Shown: in pieces, positions 52,245 to 62,646 of the stretch
How the letters are laid out: each line of letters begins with the position of its first letter
Position numbering within the stretch: position 1 is the stretch's first letter
Assembly: GCA_051294905.1 (NCBI GenBank)
Contig: CM119380.1
Location: 19,778,001-19,842,000, forward strand
Length of the DNA: 64,000 nt
DNA from: Botryllus schlosseri
Taxonomy: Eukaryota
Direction: 5' to 3'
Position numbers and translations under genes: made by a program
The notes under the pieces: generated by a model
Database searches by the model: none
The model's input: the letters and a program-made list of their open reading frames with translations, nothing else
Told to the model about the DNA's origin: nothing

Positions 52245-55200
52245 ATGGGAAATTCTGCGGGAAAGCGTATGAACAAAGTTGAGAGCGCATCTGGAAGGAG
52301 TGGAAGCCATGCCACGTTGGCTCTGCCACCACATGTCCATGTCGGGGCTTCCACGCCTATGATGCGACGGGAAGGCTCGGCCAACATCGAAGGAAAAAAT
52401 GTTATGGTGAGTTACAGCCACCAAGATGCCGAAGTAATGAGAAGTATTAAAGGTAAGAAAACTCACTTCCTCAGTATTGCGTCTTGGACCCTTGTGATTG
52501 CTGCTGACACCGCTTCTTATGATTTCAAACACAAGATATTCTTTCGGCTACTTATTGACATACCGGTACACATGCACATTGTATCAATCATTAGGACGTG
52601 GTTTTTGATATATTCGTTCATTGTGATTGCTATAGCTATGATTTCTATTTTTTGTACCAGTGTAATAACGCAAGTATTTTGTTACAATGCGTGTATTCTA
52701 GTTTAGGACAATGTGAGTCAAACAATAGCAATGTGAGCACAATAATGTTTGATGCAATTTACCAATCTCAAACCATTAGATACTGTAGTAACATAAAACT
52801 TCGATCTGGCTTTCAGTTCAAGTTTTTATTTTGTATTGTTATTCTAATAGGCGCTTTGGAATCTGCTGGACTTACCGTATGGGTCGATGAAACAGGGCTG
52901 AACCCAGGAGCAGCGTACCTCAGAGAAATTGGTGCTGCCATAGTAGATTCATCAGTATTCCTTACCATTCTTAGCCAGGACTCTGTACAGTCCAAATATT
53001 GTCAGGTAAGGCATTCGACTAACTGAATACCTTCAGTATGACAACCATTTATCAAGGTTGGATTTAGTTCGTTCAATGACATTTAGCAAATGTAATGAAT
53101 GTTTGATGTCATCAGCTCCTAAGATATTCCACGACAACGACTTGACAGTTTTCGAACCATAGTATGACAGTAACTATCCAAAACTGACTCATTGAATGAA
53201 AGATTTTTTCAAGACATTTACAATCAAAACAAATCATTCTCTTTTGTAAGGAATGAATGAATCTATTATACAATCAAAACAATAATGATTCTCTTTCTGT
53301 CCCAGTTATTGTATAACCCAGGTTTACCAACGTCTTGGCAGCAACCAACCTAGTCGGTTTTAAAATTGATAACTTCATCACAGTTGGAATTTACTTTGCA
53401 ACATTTTTCAGTAGACTAATGGATAAATATATGCCTGCTGTATAAGTTAGGTGTAGTAGCTGGATCATCTGATTTTTAGAAATGAGAGATATAGCCTAAT
53501 TCGGCTAATTGTCTTCCGGTTTGGTCAAGCCTGGCACAATCCATGCAGGATAAAAGAGCCTGGGCATACTTTAGGATATAGCACAAAGCAATACACTTGT
53601 CATGGCATTATTTGTGAATGAATTGGATATTACATAATAATCGTTACTATAATGATTGGCATCGACTCCAGTTCCTTAGCTGAAGCTGACACATAGACAC
53701 TAGATGTAGGCTTGATAATGCCTTGAAAGTAAAAAACTTAGGGTAACGGGATTGGTTATGTAGCCTATATCCTTTAAAAATTGCAATAATGATTAAGTAG
53801 GCATAAGGTATATAAAATTATACTTATTCTTAGCTACAATTACGGCACTGCATTGATGACGTTATTGATCGTGATAGTCACGTGTTGATACTTTAGTATC
53901 ATGTTCATTCTTCCCATATACTTGTCATGTCGCAATATTTAGTGTCTTTGAAAATCAAGTATTCACAAACTCAAATGCCCTATATTTTTCCATAAATGAG
54001 TTTGTTACGACGGATAATCATCTCAATTACTTGCGGCCTGTGGGATTAGGTTCAACCAACAATCTCTTGCATTATTGATACTTCGCTAATCAGCACAATG
54101 TGTCTAGCCATTTGGCATTCATGACAGGTTTTACCATACCCGGCATTGTCATCTTTTGACGTCACTACTTCGGCTTGTAATTGAATAGAAATTTATGATG
54201 TTGTTTGTACCCCTACTTGAGTAGCATCATTGACTACTTCTGACAGCTGGTGGTGCGAAGATGAACATGAACATCTACTTGACTACTCATGAAAAGTATA
54301 ACTATTCTATTACTGACCTCCAAAGTTACATATGCACCATATATCCGTATATGTAATTTTCTGTTTTAAATTGCATTCAGGAAGAGTTGTTACAACGTAA
54401 GTCTTTTTTCAGGATGAGACGTCCCTGGCGTACATTTCCAATAAAAGTATTTTCGCAGTGTCCATAGCGCCGTACGAAGAAGTCTCGCAAGTCATGGACC
54501 TGGGGATGTGAGTTTTATTGATCAGGGTGTTTAAAATCCACCCGTGAAGGTAGCCAATGTGGATAATTATGTTCCTTTCCTGTTTGTTGTTTAGGAAGTT
54601 AACTTTGTCCACTGTCCAATGGCATTTCGTGACGCCTACGGCTATGGAAGAGGAACTGAAACCGCTAATCGAAAGTATCAAAGCTTCGTTGGCGGCCAAA
54701 ACGGAATTGGATCTGGAAGAACCCGGTAATCTACGTCAAACTCTTTCTTATGTAGAATATATACCTATATTATCATAAATATTATATATATATATTATGC
54801 TACATTTTGGAGTGTCCATACCCACTGTAAAATATTTACTCTCGATAGATGTATATCTCCTGCACTATGTTACATAATTTTTTCTGACTGCTGACCATGC
54901 CGCTTTGATTAATTAATTTTTTTTTTGTTCTAGAGGACGATCCGGAAGGAGCAAACACCAATTTCATTATTAACAAACAGGCTTTTCGGTTTCGGAAGAG
55001 ACTGACTAAAAGAGAGCTGTCGGTAGATTCAATCGACGCCGATGACGAGTCGGACGTTGCGGATCGGGAGTTTTGGGGAGCGAATTTCGGTAAAGACACC
55101 CAAGTGGAATGGAAAAGGTATTCAATTTTAGTTGCTTTAAAGCAGTGGTTCTTAACCTTGCCTTGGGGGGCGCTGGCGATTTTGAAGGGGGCGGAAACGT

Positions 55201-58200
55201 TCAGGGGGCAATATGGGGGGCGCTGGGCTCAGGGGGGCGGTATGGGGGGCGCTGGAGAAAAATGGCTTCGCAGTAGATGATGCGGTGGTAGGACATATCC
55301 CTAATGAGTATTCAGAGCAAATTAATACCGAAAACTTCGACATATAGGTTTAATTGTCCATGGGCGCCTAAATGACTGGCACCGAATGTTACTGTCTTGG
55401 CAATCTGAACCCCAGAAGACGAATTCCATCTGGCAAGGAAAAATTACATACCAGTGAAGAAATCCCAATTTGAAATCGTGTGCGTCTTTTAGTTTAGTAC
55501 GATTGGGCGACAGTCATATCTAAAGCTAGATATTCCTATTGGGCGATATGCCTGTTGGGGGATTCTATATTTTTTGATATAGCAGACAGGAGGTCACGAA
55601 ATAACATCATGCAACGAAGTCATACCAACGGGTTCGCCCGCCCGAATATGTTTAATTATTAGTTACGGGCCCTACAGTTTCCAAGACACCTCACAATGTT
55701 CGCTCTACATTTTGACGAGTCTGCGCACACTTAACAACTCACTGCGCAGACCCTTGGACAACAGTGCGTAACGACTAAAAAGAGGTCATAACTTCGGATT
55801 TGTTGTGCGCAACGTATAGATTTTCTGTGCGCAGAGACCGTGTCAGCACTGCGCACGTGCGCAGCTTAGAGGGAACATTGCACCTCACTCAGCTCTAACG
55901 GTAAATCTATGGTAACGTGAGCAGAGAGGACAAGAAATTGATTGCAATATATATGCAATTCCCGATCTTACTGACCGATTTTATCATGAATTATCGAAAG
56001 TTTTCGCGCCTCGCACTGGCTCGCTAAACAGCTGATTTCGTGGCTAGAGCGAACAACGTGATGGGGGGCGGTCGGTTTATCACCCTATGGGAGCCCAAGA
56101 CCCAAGATTTTTGGGGGGGCCTGACGAAGTGCCGTTTCGTTCCTGCCAACGGGTATACGCCCGAAGATGTATAATTATTATTGAGGGGTCCTACCTTTTC
56201 AATCACACATCACTCAGCTCTACCGGTAAATCTGTTTACGTGAGCAGAGAGAGGATAAAAATTGATATCAATATAAATGCAATTCCCGATCATATTGACC
56301 GATTCAATCATTAATTATTGAAATTTTTCGCGCTTTGCGCGTCTAGCCGAGAATTGTTGGATCAGTAAACGGACACCTAATGTAGATGACTAGTATCAGC
56401 AAATAGCGGATAGCCGAAGGAGGGTCTGGGGGCGAAGCCCCCCGGAAGTCTGGCTTATCACCCGATGAGGGGCCCAAGACCAACGTTTTTTTTGGGGGGG
56501 GGGGGCTGAGGAAGTGCTGTTACGGCCCTGGTAACGAATTAATTGTACCTACGGGCACGCCCGAATATGTTTAATTAATAATTACGTCCCCTTTATTTAC
56601 CCATACAACAGCTCACTCAGCGCTACTGGTAAATCTGATAACGTGGGCTGAGAGGATAAAAAGTTTATAGCGACTTATATATGTAATTACCACCTATTCA
56701 TTCATGCATTATAGAAAATTTTGGTACCTTAGGGCGACAAGGCCACACAAACTTTGCCTACCATCGAAATCACGCTATACGGCGTTCTTGGAGGCGAAGC
56801 CCTCAGAAGTTTGGTTTATCACGCTATGGGTGCGCAAGGCAATCGTTTTTAGGCGGGTTGACGAAGTGCTGTTACGGCACTCCCTCTTAGTCATTGTCTT
56901 TATTACATTCCTTACAATATGAGGTTGGGGGGCGCTGGAGCACGATAATTTTTGAAAGGGGGCGCTGGAGGAAAAAAGGTTAAGAACCACTGCTTTAAAG
57001 TTATAAGCTTGCTGTGTTTAGTATGAGATAGCTGTATATACATAACTTAGGTTGGGAACTATTTACTTTATGGTCAGTCCAAGGGCAGTCGACATCCATT
57101 GGTCAGTACTCGATGTGGCTTGTTATCTCTGAAAATCAATTGAAATGGTGTCTTGGTGAGATATGTCGGCAGGCTAGGTGTCTCCGCAGAAACTATTCTG
57201 TGCATCTTTTGGAGTAAGTGCCAAGCATGAGACGTTGATTGTGCGTCAACATAGGCAATGGCGTGTGCTTTTTTGTAGTACTAAATTAGGTTTTCCCTAC
57301 CTGCACTCCTTGGTGATTTACACTGCTTCCATTTCTTGCAAGTTTTTGAGACAAAAAAACTTAGTTTTTATGCTTTGGATTTTGTACAACGTAGTTGTTA
57401 GCAGACTTTTGGACAACTAGAAAATATTCAGCATTTCCAAATTTTATCACAATTAAAATTACCGGATTCGAGAAAACTTGGACATTCAATCAAGTTTCAT
57501 TAATATAAAATCATAAAATCACTCTTATGAGCGTGAAAATAGCAAATGTCTGTACAGCAAGCTTGCCTCATTTCGCACTATACAGTTCTCTTGTAGGATT
57601 TACAGGAAGTCCCGAAATTAAAATTAGAGCTAAGAAAAATTCAGGAAATTAGGTTAGAATTAGATTACTGGCAATTCGCTCTAATTACTCTAGTTAGACA
57701 AGTAGAATTATGTAGTTTTCCAAGTCTGGCTGTGGGATATGTTTGGGAGCGAAATTGTCACAATAAGTGGGCGAAGTAGCCCAGTGTCACAGTCACAGTA
57801 CCTTGTAACTGAATATATTTTTTAAAATTGCACCTATTTATAGTTTTGTTAGTCGTAAAGTGGTGCACCGCATTTTCAAGAACAGCCCACTCCGATTAAC
57901 CGAGCTGTAAGTATGCAACCCCCCGTGATCAAATGTTAATTTTTGAAGCTTCTTACTCACTCGAAGACAGCAATTTTTACACACACTGGTATTTGGGTAG
58001 AAATTCATGATACTACTCCCTAATTACAAGTAGAAGTAGCAATTTCTAAGACATGTTAAGATTAGAGCCCGACCGATATTGGATTTCTGAGCCGATACCG
58101 ATAACACCGATATCCAGTACCTCCACCGATAACCTCGATATATTCAGCCGATATTCAAAATGTATGGAATCTAGCTCAAGGCCCATATTTAACACCTCAG

Positions 58201-61200
58201 AGCATTTATTTCAACAACTTTACAGCCATTGATATGCTTGAACATGAAATAAATGATCTAGGGCAGGGGCGGGCAACTTCTCGAGTCGGCGGGCCGCATA
58301 TAGGAAAATTAAGTACTTGGCAGGCCGGATTGCTGAATCGATACAATATTCGCCCATTCATCCAAATTCCACATATACACGGAATAAATCGCATTTAATG
58401 AATACATTTTAACGACAGTAATGTCACTTCAAAGCCATTTCTCGCCGATAATGACGAAGACAATGTGGATTTGAGAATAGCATTGTCATACAGGCGCCGC
58501 CATGTCTGCTTCTATCTGATCAATCAACACACGGTGCCATCCTCAATTAAGATTTCAAGGAGTTCGATAACCCCGGTACCCCTAATTTACCAACACATAT
58601 ATTCGTTTGGATTGAGTAGGTGACGAGATAGCATCGTTGTTCAACTGTGTGGCCTGAGAAATCTCGATAATGAATTCATGCGGTCCGCGACCTCTACGAA
58701 ATTTGAAAAGTGGCCCGCGACCCGTTTTGAGTTGGCGACCCCTGGTATAAACAGTGTTTTCGTCTTACAAAAGCCTAGAAGTGTGCCGTGCTACAAGTCG
58801 GCGGTTACAGAATGAAAAATAAGAAATATCAGCCTGGTGTAATTGACCATTGTAGTCGACAAACACCATGATTACCACAAACGAAATTAGGGTTGAGTAC
58901 ATCGCAAATGCCGATAATGCAAGTCTTCTCGCTTCGACGAACTTACGCGTAAGCTCCACTCTAGCACGCTGCGCATATACGTATATAATAACATGCACAT
59001 GCAGTCACTAAAATTTGACGTTGTAAGCAAGTAGTGGGAAATCTCGGCAGACTAGGGCCGCGTGCCACATTATCATGTAAAACGGAAAACTGTCCGCGGG
59101 CCGGACAAAATCCCTTCGCGGGCCGTATGTTGCCCACCCCTGATCTAGGGGCTATAAAAATATATCAAAAGCACCAATCCAGCAGTTGCAGATTACAGTT
59201 CACGAAGCACAATTTCTCGGCGCTTTCTCCAAGGAGTGAACTTCTGTGGTCTTTCATAAATGATGTATATAGTACTAAACACAGTGAGCAGTCTTTCACT
59301 TGGTACCTAGTGGCACAGCAAGGATTGGAAATCTTTCTTCATTTCGGTTCCACCGCTCCCTTGCAGGGGATCTTTCCTTCAATGGTTTCACCAAATATTG
59401 ATATTCTTCTGGCAGAGCACCTGGAGCCTTCAGCACATCATCAACAAATAGCTGAAGAGAAAGTTGAAAACAACTCAAATTGTCCATGTCTGCAACTGCT
59501 CCACCCATCCCCCTTGGGCCTTGACCATGACCAGCATTTCAACAATCAATTGATCAATATTTTACGCTCTTTCGTCAGAATTGGCCAATGTCATCATGGA
59601 ATCAAAAATGTTCGGATCTGTTATTGGCTTTACTCCACCTTTGCTTGATTTTCTTGCCCTCTATGCTCGCATATTTCCTATCATGGTGGCCCCGCAGGTC
59701 TCAGCCCTCAGTCAGAGTGTCAGACGACTTCATACATTACTGGTATAATTAGCTCTGTTGGTACCGAACCAATAGCACTATCTTCAGAGAAACGTTTCGA
59801 CGCGACGCTTTTCTCTATCATCACGAGGGCCAGTCCAGCATGATTGAAGTTCTCATTTCTCTTACTGATTGAAATCTTCTGCAGACAACTATCCATCCAG
59901 GATCCAGCTGCTCTCTGTCTTTGGTGATCGATTGATTACTGCAGGGGGATTCCCACGAAGTCAGCGGGGCATAACGGTGATTAGTTATCTACAATATTTT
60001 TCAGATAGGAACGCCTACTGCCCGCTATGCAGCATGCACTATATGCAGCTTGGCCATTTATTTTTCTAATTTACCACCCTCACGTCTTCTATCGACTTCT
60101 CTGACTCCCTGCCACCATGTTGTGACGTCATGAAAAAGGCCGATATTTTTTTACCTTCAATGGCCGATACCGATATTTCTCTCCAAGCGTGATATCGACT
60201 CGATATTATCGGCGAGCCGATAATCGGTCGGGCTCTAGTTAAGATTACTCCGAGTGTAATTAGAATATGAAAGGGCCAAAACTACTGAAAAAGAAGTTTG
60301 AATAGCAGATTATGTCGAGGTCTATACTTGAGCGCCAGTGCTGACTAATATGACCATCTCTATTCCCGCTGATAAGCTCGCGTCAAGCTCACACTTTCAT
60401 ATGTGTGTATTGGAGTCGACCTTTATCAAAATACATCAGCTCAATATTTGTCTACAAAAGGAGTTTTGTGTACCATCGTTAAAATTGTACATTTAACGCT
60501 CTGTAATAAATTTGAGAGTTCATTCCATGCTGGTGACGTCATATTTTGTGATGCGATTGTTGATATACAATGTTCTTTCCAATTCTCTACTAGTTGCTGA
60601 CGATTACCCCTGACGAGTGTCAGCCGAAAATATTCAGGTTTATTTCAATATGGGTATAATATTCAATTGTATATTCAAGCTGTTGCATTGATGTTTCATT
60701 ATGTGCGATGTCACTCTTCACGCATCCGATGTCTCGTTGGCAGATTTGTCGAAGCCATGAACGACTCTTACCAGAAGCTGTGGGTGCAAATGACGGTTTC
60801 CGATCAACAGCGGCAGCTGCTGATCCACCTCATGAGCAGGGAAATGGCGGTGAAGAGAGGCGTCGTTACTTTCGCGCAATTCAAAAGTGAGGCGCCAATC
60901 AGCTCGCTCATTCTGGTTTCGGCCTGTTCCTAACCCCCGGCTACCTTTTCTATGCAGAGTTTTGCACCCGCGGACGAGAAGTGCTGCCGCTTTCGCAAGC
61001 CATTAGGCTGTATGCCGCTCAGACCTATGCTATGAAGGGAGTGTTTGACGTGAATTCAAGCGTTCGGCTTTCTGCTATCGATAATTTGAGTAAGTTTATG
61101 TGATCTGATCGGAGGCTCTCTTTCCGCTCTAAATTTTTTAGGTAAAACGAATTTTCATATTTTGTATAAGCGATTGTAGTTTTGGAACATGTTTGTATCA

Positions 61201-62646
61201 ATTTACAGGCAAAATTGTCATGATGTCCGAGTGTATTTTCGAAAATTGCACCTATCCATACTCCTGTAGTATCGTTTGTCATTTCCCAACCTGCAATTTC
61301 AAAAGTAACCACCTAAAATTAGTAAATTTATACCTAGTTTGTAGTTGGTTGACTAAAAAAAAAGGTCATTTTTCCGACTCGACTCCAGAAATATACACTT
61401 TTGTTGAATTCTCCGTTGGTTGACTAAAAAAATGGTCAACTTTCCGGCTCAAATCCTGAAATACCCCCCGGGACGTTACTTGAGTACTGATTTCCTATTT
61501 CTCAGTCGAATTTTAACATACATTTAACCAAAATTTTCAAAATAGAGGACATTTGGACGTCCTCCATGGACACTTCCAAAAAAGTACTTTATGTCTTTTT
61601 TCAAAGTACTGGGAGATCGCAGCGTTGTGGCAATCTCCAGTAAGCATTCCATCGTAATCATAATTAGCAGTTCTATTATTGTCGTCTGCTCAAGACGTGC
61701 ACTGCGGAACATAAGGCGCAATGCTATGTAATCAACAGATAGGAGGATGTCGAAACGACCAAGAACAGTCTATCAATCTAACATCCAACTCGGCCCACTG
61801 GTAGTAGGTGTATTAACCCACGACTCTTTCTTTTCATCCTTGGTCTTTTCACCCTCTTTCTTGTATTAGTCCTTTGTAGGGTCTAACTCTGGGCTTTTTA
61901 GAAAAGCGCCATTAGAACAGAGACAGCTATGGCTGGATTGGGTCTGACAACTCGAATTTGTATGCAGAAAAATACCAGTCGCGGGCCGTGATCGATTCCT
62001 TGCTGGACCTGCTGGAAGACGAGGAGGAAGACCCGGACGTACTGGTGGTGGCGGCTATGTCTTTGGCTCACGCCGCCAAAGGTATCAAAGTTTTTAAAGC
62101 CAGGGCGGAAGAGAGGTGAGCAATGAGCATTGTTAAAAGTAGATTCACTCAATTGCCCCAGTCCGCCATTAATTGATATTTTTATCAATTCAAAAACACC
62201 ACAAGATTGAGATATAATAAAAAGATGGTGGTTGTTGAAATCACTTGAGAATTGGGATAGTAATTATGGGGTATGCAGACTGAATGAAAAGTGGTAAAAG
62301 AAAATATGGAAGCGATGAAAATCAATGAAGAATATGTCTGTAGGAGTTCATGTCAGATCAAAGGCTGGCTAGTATTTATTGACGCACATATTTCAGTTTG
62401 GTGAAATGTCTGGCGCACCCCGACCGGCTGGTGCGCGAGAGCGGCTGCCTGGCGCTGGGTCGGTTGAAAAGCAAAAAGGCAGTCGCCAAGTTGGTGCAGA
62501 TCTGGCGCAACGACTACATATCCACAGTGCGGGAAGCCGCGCAGATCGCCATCAATCAGATCGGCGGGGATGACGCCGAGCAGGCCATGCACGTCACGAA
62601 GCTGCTGTCGGAGGAGATAACCGAAATCAAGAAGATGCCGCATTAG
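52245..62646 (+). CDS. TIR (TIR_2-like) domain + Cbl-type EF-hand-like + HEAT-repeat protein, 481 aa; exons 52245-52452, 52851-53005, 54413-54507, 54595-54725, 54934-55117, 60744-60886, 60958-61089, 61968-62115, 62397-62646
   Basis: TIR motifs VMVSYSHQD...LTVWVDETGL...LREIGAAIVDSSVFLTILSQDSVQSKYCQDE. The middle reads EFWGANFGKDTQVEWKRFVEA. The C-terminus has HEAT-like repeats (VRLSAIDNL; LLDLLED...DVLVVAAMSL; LAHPDRLVRESGCLALG; TVREAAQIAI). All 8 introns are GT-AG and phase-consistent, totalling 1446 nt. Confidence 0.85.
55143..56992. mobile_element. 1.85-kb non-autonomous Charlie-like hAT element with internal ~300-400 bp tandem units, in TIR-gene intron 5
   Basis: TIR cagtggttcttaacctt / aaggttaagaaccactg; 8-bp TSD CTTTAAAG at 55135-55142 and 56993-57000. 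The internal motif cactcagc(t/g)cta...ggtaaatct recurs at ~55885, 56212 and 56613. Confidence 0.92.
55694..55880 (-). mobile_element. caatgttccc-family MITE nested inside the Charlie-like element
   Basis: Reverse-complement copy of 35432-35625, flanked by a cacctca direct repeat. Confidence 0.85.
58264..59142. mobile_element. Charlie-like hAT element nested inside the 58063-60237 element
   Basis: TIR caggggcgggcaac / gttgcccacccctg; 8-bp TSD ATCTAGGG at 58256-58263 and 59143-59150. Confidence 0.9.
59190..59720 (-). pseudogene. Decayed hAT transposase, C-terminal dimerisation region
   Basis: Minus-strand frames give EYQYLVKPLKERSPARERWNRNEERFPILA, then after a frameshift PSERLLTVFSTIYIIYERPQKFTP. 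This matches the hAT dimerisation pattern YL..P...W..N..RFP.LA...SER.FS. Stops and frameshifts are present. Confidence 0.65.

Follow-up and report, generated by a model that had tools for sequence, protein, structure and literature searches.

A TIR protein of Botryllus schlosseri with a Cbl-like EF-hand pair and C-terminal HEAT repeats, and its family in animals

We analysed a stretch of 64,000 nucleotides (nt) from the ascidian Botryllus schlosseri (GenBank assembly GCA_051294905.1, contig CM119380.1, positions 19,778,001 to 19,842,000 of the forward strand; hereafter called the window) and in it a gene on the + strand at positions 52245-62646. The locus is a single-copy, transcribed gene of nine exons that encodes a protein of 481 amino acids (aa), the ascidian orthologue of a conserved family. 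From the N- to the C-terminus the protein is composed of a Met-Gly myristoylation-type motif, a TIR domain of the TIR_2 class, a variable acidic linker, an EF-hand pair that is closest to that of Cbl, and four HEAT repeats. The explanation that we favour overall, with a probability slightly above one half (about 0.55), is a myristate-tethered TIR effector that would be controlled by its EF-hand and HEAT module. Innate immune signalling in animals, plants and bacteria centres on TIR proteins, many of which are NAD+-consuming enzymes; for the protein discussed here we infer an immune role.

Searching 1.8 billion representative sequences with the last exon gave full-length relatives colinear with the window protein, and a subsequent profile search returned ca. 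80 clusters at E <= 1e-74, down to 1e-169. The family extends over the sponge Corticium, Trichoplax, many molluscs (including Aplysia), annelids, Lingula, a nemertean, an orthonectid, echinoderms, hemichordates, amphioxus, and the ascidians Ciona, Phallusia and Styela; the matches, with the 8000 best candidates scored, included none from vertebrates, arthropods or nematodes. Its members are listed in the databases as 'uncharacterized', 'TIR domain-containing' or 'protein tirA-like'. Precomputed Pfam annotations of about 80 of them nowhere list Cbl_N2, and leave the middle 100 residues unannotated in every orthologue listed. One relative, P0228 (eukprot, 561 aa), has protein-kinase Pfam domains ahead of its TIR, EF-hand-like and HEAT parts and could represent a fusion with a kinase or gene models that were merged. 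The initial annotation of the window, made from its letters alone, had proposed an undescribed innate-immune candidate. Literature searches on TIR + HEAT or Cbl-like proteins found no functional study, nor any paper that connects a Cbl-type EF-hand with TIR proteins, and to that extent the description stands; the protein is no orphan, since the databases already contain the metazoan-wide family to which it is orthologous. As far as could be checked, the gene is ordinary as a family member, and what is new is the domain assignment and the family-wide picture.

The TIR domain, the HEAT repeats and the proposed function

By its sequence the TIR domain falls into the TIR_2 (SARM1/bacterial) class, and it retains the glutamate at the catalytic position. 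Exon 2 alone matches the Pfam model TIR_2 (PF13676) with 39.9 bits (E 6.9e-10; gathering cut-off 28 bits), and ten orthologues score 51-89 bits with this model versus 15-34 bits with the TIR model PF01582. The solved sequences nearest to the family's TIR profile are those of the CRISPR-associated NADase Cat1 (5.6e-10), then of TLR15/2 and SARM1, followed by bacterial NADase TIRs and plant TIRs; the TIR domains of TLR1 and TLR6 also are among the closest. Glu123 aligns with the ..WDEL.. of Cat1, and the BB-loop region aligns well with SARM1. Of the 85 family members, 80 have Glu in the column of the catalytic position and 70 have a Tyr or Phe four residues before it; Y119...E123 in the window protein is the same pairing of an aromatic residue with the catalytic-position Glu that is found in NAD+-cleaving TIR enzymes.

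The N-terminus, MGNSAGK, conforms to the N-myristoylation pattern. Of the 85 members, 47 begin with MG and 41 fit the PROSITE myristoylation pattern. Behind the TIR domain, the linker (aa 166-236) has 18 D/E versus 10 K/R. LRR, death and SAM domains had no Pfam match in the ten orthologues; as to MyD88/TLR features, the window exons likewise gave no death or LRR match, and the model of the orthologue P0208 is without a transmembrane helix. HEAT_2 (PF13646) is matched by the last exon with 35 bits (E 1.8e-8; cut-off 27.7 bits) and by the ten orthologues with 55-101 bits. The full-length model was that of P0208, the closest orthologue at 70% identity (predicted local distance difference test, pLDDT, 83.9; predicted template modelling score, pTM, 0.75). 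It consists of a disordered N-terminus, a TIR domain (46-160), a long helix (164-191), a poorly ordered acidic linker, a middle domain (235-330), and eight helices that make up four HEAT repeats (337-472). The HEAT part (C-terminal 135 residues) superimposes on alphaRep over 133 columns with a root-mean-square deviation (rmsd) of ~2 A and 28-31% identity; the repeats are of the PBS/alphaRep type. The initial annotation had read a TIR_2-like domain, an acidic linker and C-terminal HEAT-like repeats, and had concluded from the lack of LRR, death and SAM domains that the protein is not a TLR, MyD88 or SARM1; with the TIR domain N-terminal and none of these domains found in the ten orthologues, all of this is borne out.

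In the effector that we favour, the myristate anchor would place the TIR domain at a membrane, where it would signal by self-association, as in SARM1 or in bacterial or plant TIRs; by analogy the likeliest form of this signalling, with an even chance, would be through cleavage of NAD+. The EF-hand pair and the HEAT repeats would make up a single rigid unit at the C-terminus, which would bind a partner or ligand and control the TIR domain, in a manner likened to that of the ARM domain over SARM1, and in this species the EF-hand would be structural and no Ca2+ switch. In Cbl, the EF-hand sits as a structural wedge between the domains on either side; here it may, by analogy, cap the HEAT solenoid.

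It is possible, but less likely, that the TIR domain is a non-enzymatic scaffold instead, and that the protein, myristoylated and comparable to TRAM/TICAM2, serves Toll/IL-1-type signalling as an adaptor or as a negative regulator, with the EF-hand/HEAT part recruiting downstream factors. The presence of the TLR15/2, TLR1 and TLR6 domains among the closest solved sequences agrees with an adaptor, the vertebrate adaptor TRAM uses N-myristoylation, and other novel amphioxus TIR proteins regulate MyD88 and TICAM signalling. Such conserved invertebrate TIR proteins are treated as putative adaptors or regulators also in two surveys (PMC6321704, PMC9334734). However, an adaptor fits poorly with TIR_2 scores that far exceed those of the TLR/MyD88-type model, with a BB-loop region that aligns well with SARM1, and with a catalytic-position Glu kept in 94% of the members over more than 600 million years of divergence. 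A more far-reaching version of the favoured effector, which we consider unlikely, is an ancient membrane-tethered, NAD+-cleaving TIR enzyme gated by a C-terminal sensor in which the Cbl-type EF-hand caps the HEAT solenoid. If true, such an enzyme would respond to Ca2+ in the lineages that have the ligand residues (e.g. hemichordates) and to a partner or ligand elsewhere; it would represent a SARM1-like logic with reversed domain order that was lost in vertebrates; and the Cbl EF-hand, early in the history of animals, would have been a mobile module that existed apart from the TKB region.

Several points weigh against the effector as we describe it. The catalytic-position Glu occurs also in non-enzymatic TLR TIR domains, and so is necessary but insufficient. 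In the Pfam and folding analyses orthologues with 42-70% identity stood in for the spliced protein of the window. The sequence E-values for Cbl homology are, taken singly, marginal (~1e-3 to 1e-5), as is that of Foldseek (~6e-3); it is the consistency of the rankings that carries the case. Finally, raw RNA-seq reads of runs X24 (bulk, 6% sampled) and X20 had no depth on exons 5 and 6, from which low expression follows for X24.

Kinship and calcium ligands of the middle segment

No part of the protein is more family-specific than its middle segment. This segment had been quoted correctly in the initial annotation (DVADREFWGANFGKDTQVEWKR followed by FVEAM...VTFAQFKKF) and likened there to the EF-hand of Cbl, a likeness that is upheld by Pfam, by a profile search of PDB sequences, and by Foldseek and VIA-align searches with an AlphaFold model. 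The family consensus reads FW.r.FG....V.W..F...F ... WLl.iL..E..v......v....f..FC..., and is followed by a helix ending in VF directly before HEAT repeat 1. The complete Cbl-like domain needs exons 5 and 6 and extends into exon 7, of which it takes up the first two thirds. It had been claimed that the Cbl-like segment appears only upon joining exons 5 and 6; this is correct for the whole domain, which spans both exons, but the signature FW..FG....V.W lies mostly within exon 5.

We think it probable that the segment is specifically akin to the Cbl EF-hand, and prefer this to a generic EF-hand because the four methods agree and the first half is exclusive to Cbl. Pfam Cbl_N2 (PF02761) was found in 11 of 16 isolated orthologue middle segments, below its 22-bit cut-off (best E 2.6e-5), and no other Pfam family recurs among the 16. 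One of the ten full-length orthologues, that of a sea cucumber, passes the cut-off with 22.8 bits. Exons 5 and 6 submitted separately gave no Cbl_N2 match, since the domain is divided between them and neither piece is long enough. A PF02761 scan of the whole genome detected the genuine Cbl gene only (on another contig, C11:12497586-12498103, loci L005 and L006, with Cbl_N2 over two exons, the second at 80 bits), and not the present locus. When the family profiles were searched against all 177,635 PDB sequences, the matches of the N-terminal half of the segment (positions 5-33) were confined to Cbl, Cbl-b and a choanoflagellate Cbl (E 6e-4 to 7e-3); the C-terminal half matched EF-hand calcium-binding proteins of Entamoeba (E 3e-5). 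Over FW..FG..T.V.WK.F..A the window protein shares 11 of 24 residues with c-Cbl.

An AlphaFold model of P0208:229-330, built on a 50-sequence alignment (pLDDT 87.4, pTM 0.79), has two helix-loop-helix units with a short strand in each loop, the hallmark of paired EF-hands, plus a fifth helix. Both Foldseek and VIA-align superimpose this fold on the Cbl EF-hand (~178-265). In Foldseek against the PDB, ranks 1-45 are all Cbl or Cbl-b TKB structures (template modelling score, TM, by query 0.52-0.62; 20-26% identity), and the first ordinary EF-hand protein, calcineurin B, comes at rank 46. VIA-align, which is independent of Foldseek and covered 48,161 representatives, also puts Cbl first (Z 9.3, 85 residues, rmsd 3.2, 22% identity, Cbl 183-269), followed by DCN1-type and calmodulin-type EF-hands at Z 6.9 or less. 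Among the AFDB clusters, the model matches Cbl from many phyla and amoebozoan SH2 proteins. The spliced residues 236-335 of the window protein match the family's hidden Markov model (HMM) at 87.3 bits, and therefore the Cbl results obtained with orthologues carry over to it. The closest predicted EF-hand-like copy is in A0A1S3I641, a second Lingula protein (357 aa, residues 243-334; TM 0.82, 30% identity).

The alternative, a generic degenerate EF-hand pair with a likeness to Cbl that arose by convergence or by chance in a short motif, appears quite unlikely to us. It accords with the weakness of all the sequence E-values, with a C-terminal half that fits ordinary EF-hand proteins (EhCaBP1) better than Cbl, and with language-model features (ESM Atlas), which yielded only generic EF-hand clusters at low scores of ~0.77. 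An hhalign comparison of the family profile with the genome's own 57-aa Cbl exon gave a probability of 11% and aligned only the V.W..F stretch, the template being one partial, inadequate sequence. A generic pair is contradicted by the restriction of the N-terminal half to Cbl-family chains in the PDB, by 45 Foldseek ranks of Cbl ahead of all calmodulin-like proteins, by the lead of Cbl by 2.4 Z units over the next fold in the Foldseek-independent search, and by the residues common to the window protein and c-Cbl.

For the calcium ligands we compared the 12-residue loop of EF-hand 2 among the 85 members, with a conserved Phe as the anchor. In the window this loop is M-A-V-K-R-G-V-V-T-F-A-Q, with M, V, R and Q at the ligand positions 1, 3, 5 and 12, as foreseen by the earlier suggestion that the Ca-binding residues appear to be replaced and that the segment may not bind Ca2+. 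Gly6 and the hydrophobic position 8 are retained and the oxygen ligands lost; it is not a canonical Ca2+-binding EF-hand. In the family, position 8 is I, L or V in 80 of 85 members and Gly6 is present in 23; Asp3 and Asp/Asn5 are common, and an acidic position 12 is rare (14 of 85). To judge from the residues, a canonical loop has left clear traces here. The hemichordate proteins P0170, P0188 and P0209 have a near-canonical loop, N.D.N......E/D, and a plausible ligand set is kept there and in a few others, while the sea-star proteins P0177, P0179 and P0183 read DEDGDG...H, with His at position 12; such lineage-specific patterns may mark retained or altered metal binding. The genuine Cbl of the Botryllus genome keeps a D..N.Y.....E-type loop that is lost in the TIR protein. 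Almost certainly, then, the domain in Botryllus schlosseri is without canonical Ca2+ binding, and because its ligand positions are hydrophobic or basic, the EF-hand would be a structural element in this species rather than a Ca2+ switch.

Gene model, transcripts and the repeats of intron 5

Six-frame reading, inspection of splice sites and alignment of orthologues to the DNA gave nine GT-AG exons (Table 1). The spliced coding sequence of 1446 nt is an open frame for exactly the 481 aa predicted in the initial annotation, and all eight introns are of the GT..AG type. The model is colinear over its full length with P0208 (70% identity) and with P0206 of Styela clava (53%); identity to the Phallusia and Ciona proteins is 45% and 42%. 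The 495-Mb assembly is matched by these nine exons only. Exon 7 joins 61968 directly, because the phases fit no other join and the orthologues read straight through; a candidate short exon at ~61603-61635 was rejected on its unfitting phases and on orthologues running directly from ..AI.NL to KKYQSRAV.

Four RNA runs were placed on 54990-60989. The joint 55117|60744 between exons 5 and 6 is present in one assembled contig each of runs X1 (370 nt) and X4 (896 nt), which come from different studies. Both contigs skip 5626 nt with GT..AG ends and therefore derive from spliced RNA; that of X4 also spans the joint 60886|60958 between exons 6 and 7. The junction on which the reading of the middle segment had been made to depend is thus found in transcripts. 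The notion that the gene model is an artefact, either a pseudogene or a chance chain of pieces of open reading frames (ORFs), could point to the hand-splicing and to the raw reads without depth on exons 5-6, but is already effectively refuted by the open frame through nine GT-AG exons, the spliced contigs from two studies, the 53-70% identity to colinear, full-length ascidian orthologues, and the 87 bits of the spliced middle segment with the family HMM.

Table 1. Exons of the gene, intron 5 and the repeats inside it (positions in the window)
Feature	Position	Strand	Length	Content and evidence
Exon 1	52245..52452	+		Start codon, N-terminus, low-complexity stretch; TIR start at ~52395; tblastn to orthologues
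Exon 2	52851..53005	+		TIR core, BB-loop region (...SKYCQ); Pfam TIR_2
Exon 3	54413..54507	+		TIR continued; codon 54416-54418 is Glu123, the catalytic-glutamate position of NAD-cleaving TIRs
Exon 4	54595..54725	+		TIR end (~54631), then start of long helix and acidic linker
Exon 5	54934..55117	+		Acidic linker, then first half of EF-hand 1 of the Cbl-type domain, from ~55050: ..EFWGANFGKDTQVEWK
Intron 5	55118..60743	+	5626 nt	GT..AG; mostly interspersed repeats
Repeat A	~55167-57000		1.83 kb	At least 14 genomic copies, 89-97% identity
Repeat B	58055-58263 + 59141-60245		~1.3 kb	At least 20 genomic copies, ~99% identity
Repeat C	~58256-59128		~0.87 kb	Inserted into B; copies 97-99% identity
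Exon 6	60744..60886	+		Remainder of EF-hand 1 and EF-hand 2; degenerate second loop MAVKRGVVTFAQ
Exon 7	60958..61089	+		Fifth helix of the EF-hand-like domain (to ~61046), start of HEAT repeat 1 ..VFDVNSSVRLSAIDNL
Exon 8	61968..62115	+		HEAT repeats 1-2; tblastn 79-83% identity to P0208 and P0206
Exon 9	62397..62646	+		HEAT repeats 3-4, C-terminal helix, TAG stop; HEAT_2; 87% identity to P0208

A first look at the repeats of intron 5 gave 24,472 candidates, and transcript contigs have very high depth over these repeats, repeat A included. The RNA joint 58253->59141, also seen within the intron, is explained by the transcription of copies of B that lack C elsewhere in the genome. In the nested repeats of 58055-60245, the near-identity of the copies of B suggests recent activity. 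The raw RNA reads show poly-G loose ends at 56505, within repeat A. The ORFs of intron 5, including those of repeat A, contain no Pfam domain, and no transposase domain was found in them; the earlier description of the intron as 'transposon-filled' is correct in the sense of mobile interspersed repeats, which make up most of it.

Comparison with known systems

SARM1, an ARM-SAM-SAM-TIR NAD+ hydrolase, has in common with the window protein a TIR domain of the TIR_2 class, the catalytic-position Glu, a similar BB-loop region, alpha-solenoid repeats in the same polypeptide that could regulate the TIR domain, and membrane association, which for the window protein is suggested by the myristoylation motif. 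The two differ in domain order (TIR comes first here) and in the type of repeat (HEAT/PBS rather than ARM), and they are not orthologues; there are no SAM domains here and so no evidence for an octamer ring, and the anchor is a myristoylation motif, whereas SARM1 has a mitochondrial targeting sequence. TRAM/TICAM2, the myristoylated TIR adaptor of vertebrates, likewise has a TIR domain preceded by an N-terminal Met-Gly motif of the myristoylation type. TRAM, however, has neither an EF-hand nor HEAT repeats, its TIR domain belongs to the PF01582 type, and the kinship seen is that of the TIR fold. The alphaRep/PBS-lyase HEAT-like repeats (HEAT_2, HEAT_PBS) resemble the C-terminal 135 residues as described above; they are a generic binding scaffold there, and are fused to a TIR domain and an EF-hand here.

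Probably the family was counted among the classes named 'ecTIR-DC' (2017, as cited in PMC6321704) or 'ARM-TIR' (Aplysia immunome, PMC9334734). These are conserved multidomain TIR proteins of invertebrates that are absent from vertebrates and proposed to be adaptors or regulators; the present family resembles them, and has members in Aplysia and Trichoplax. Unlike our description, the accessible texts mention no Cbl-type EF-hand. The full architecture of this TIR family, which spans almost all the non-vertebrate, non-ecdysozoan phyla sampled, is now defined, including a combination of TIR and Cbl-type EF-hand that standard annotation does not display. The family also offers a target for work on NADase activity, myristoylation and Ca2+ binding in the tractable chordates Ciona and amphioxus.

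The EF-hand of the Cbl TKB region (PF02761; PDB 2CBL, 1B47, 6XAR) is the best structural match in the PDB. It is likewise a four-helix EF-hand pair with a trailing helix, and has the signature FW..FG....V.W..F at its first helix-loop-helix; as in Cbl, the role of the domain probably is structural rather than switching. The window protein is not a Cbl, because it lacks the preceding four-helix bundle as well as the SH2 and RING domains; it also is without the linker that follows in Cbl, and TIR and HEAT flank the EF-hand pair instead. Moreover, the Ca2+ ligands of loop 2 in Cbl are replaced here, and the Pfam scores mostly fall below the cut-off. To our knowledge, the Cbl-type EF-hand has so far been regarded as part of the integrated TKB platform and was known only from Cbl. 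Its appearance in a quite different context, between a TIR domain and HEAT repeats, provides a data point on how the TKB region was assembled.

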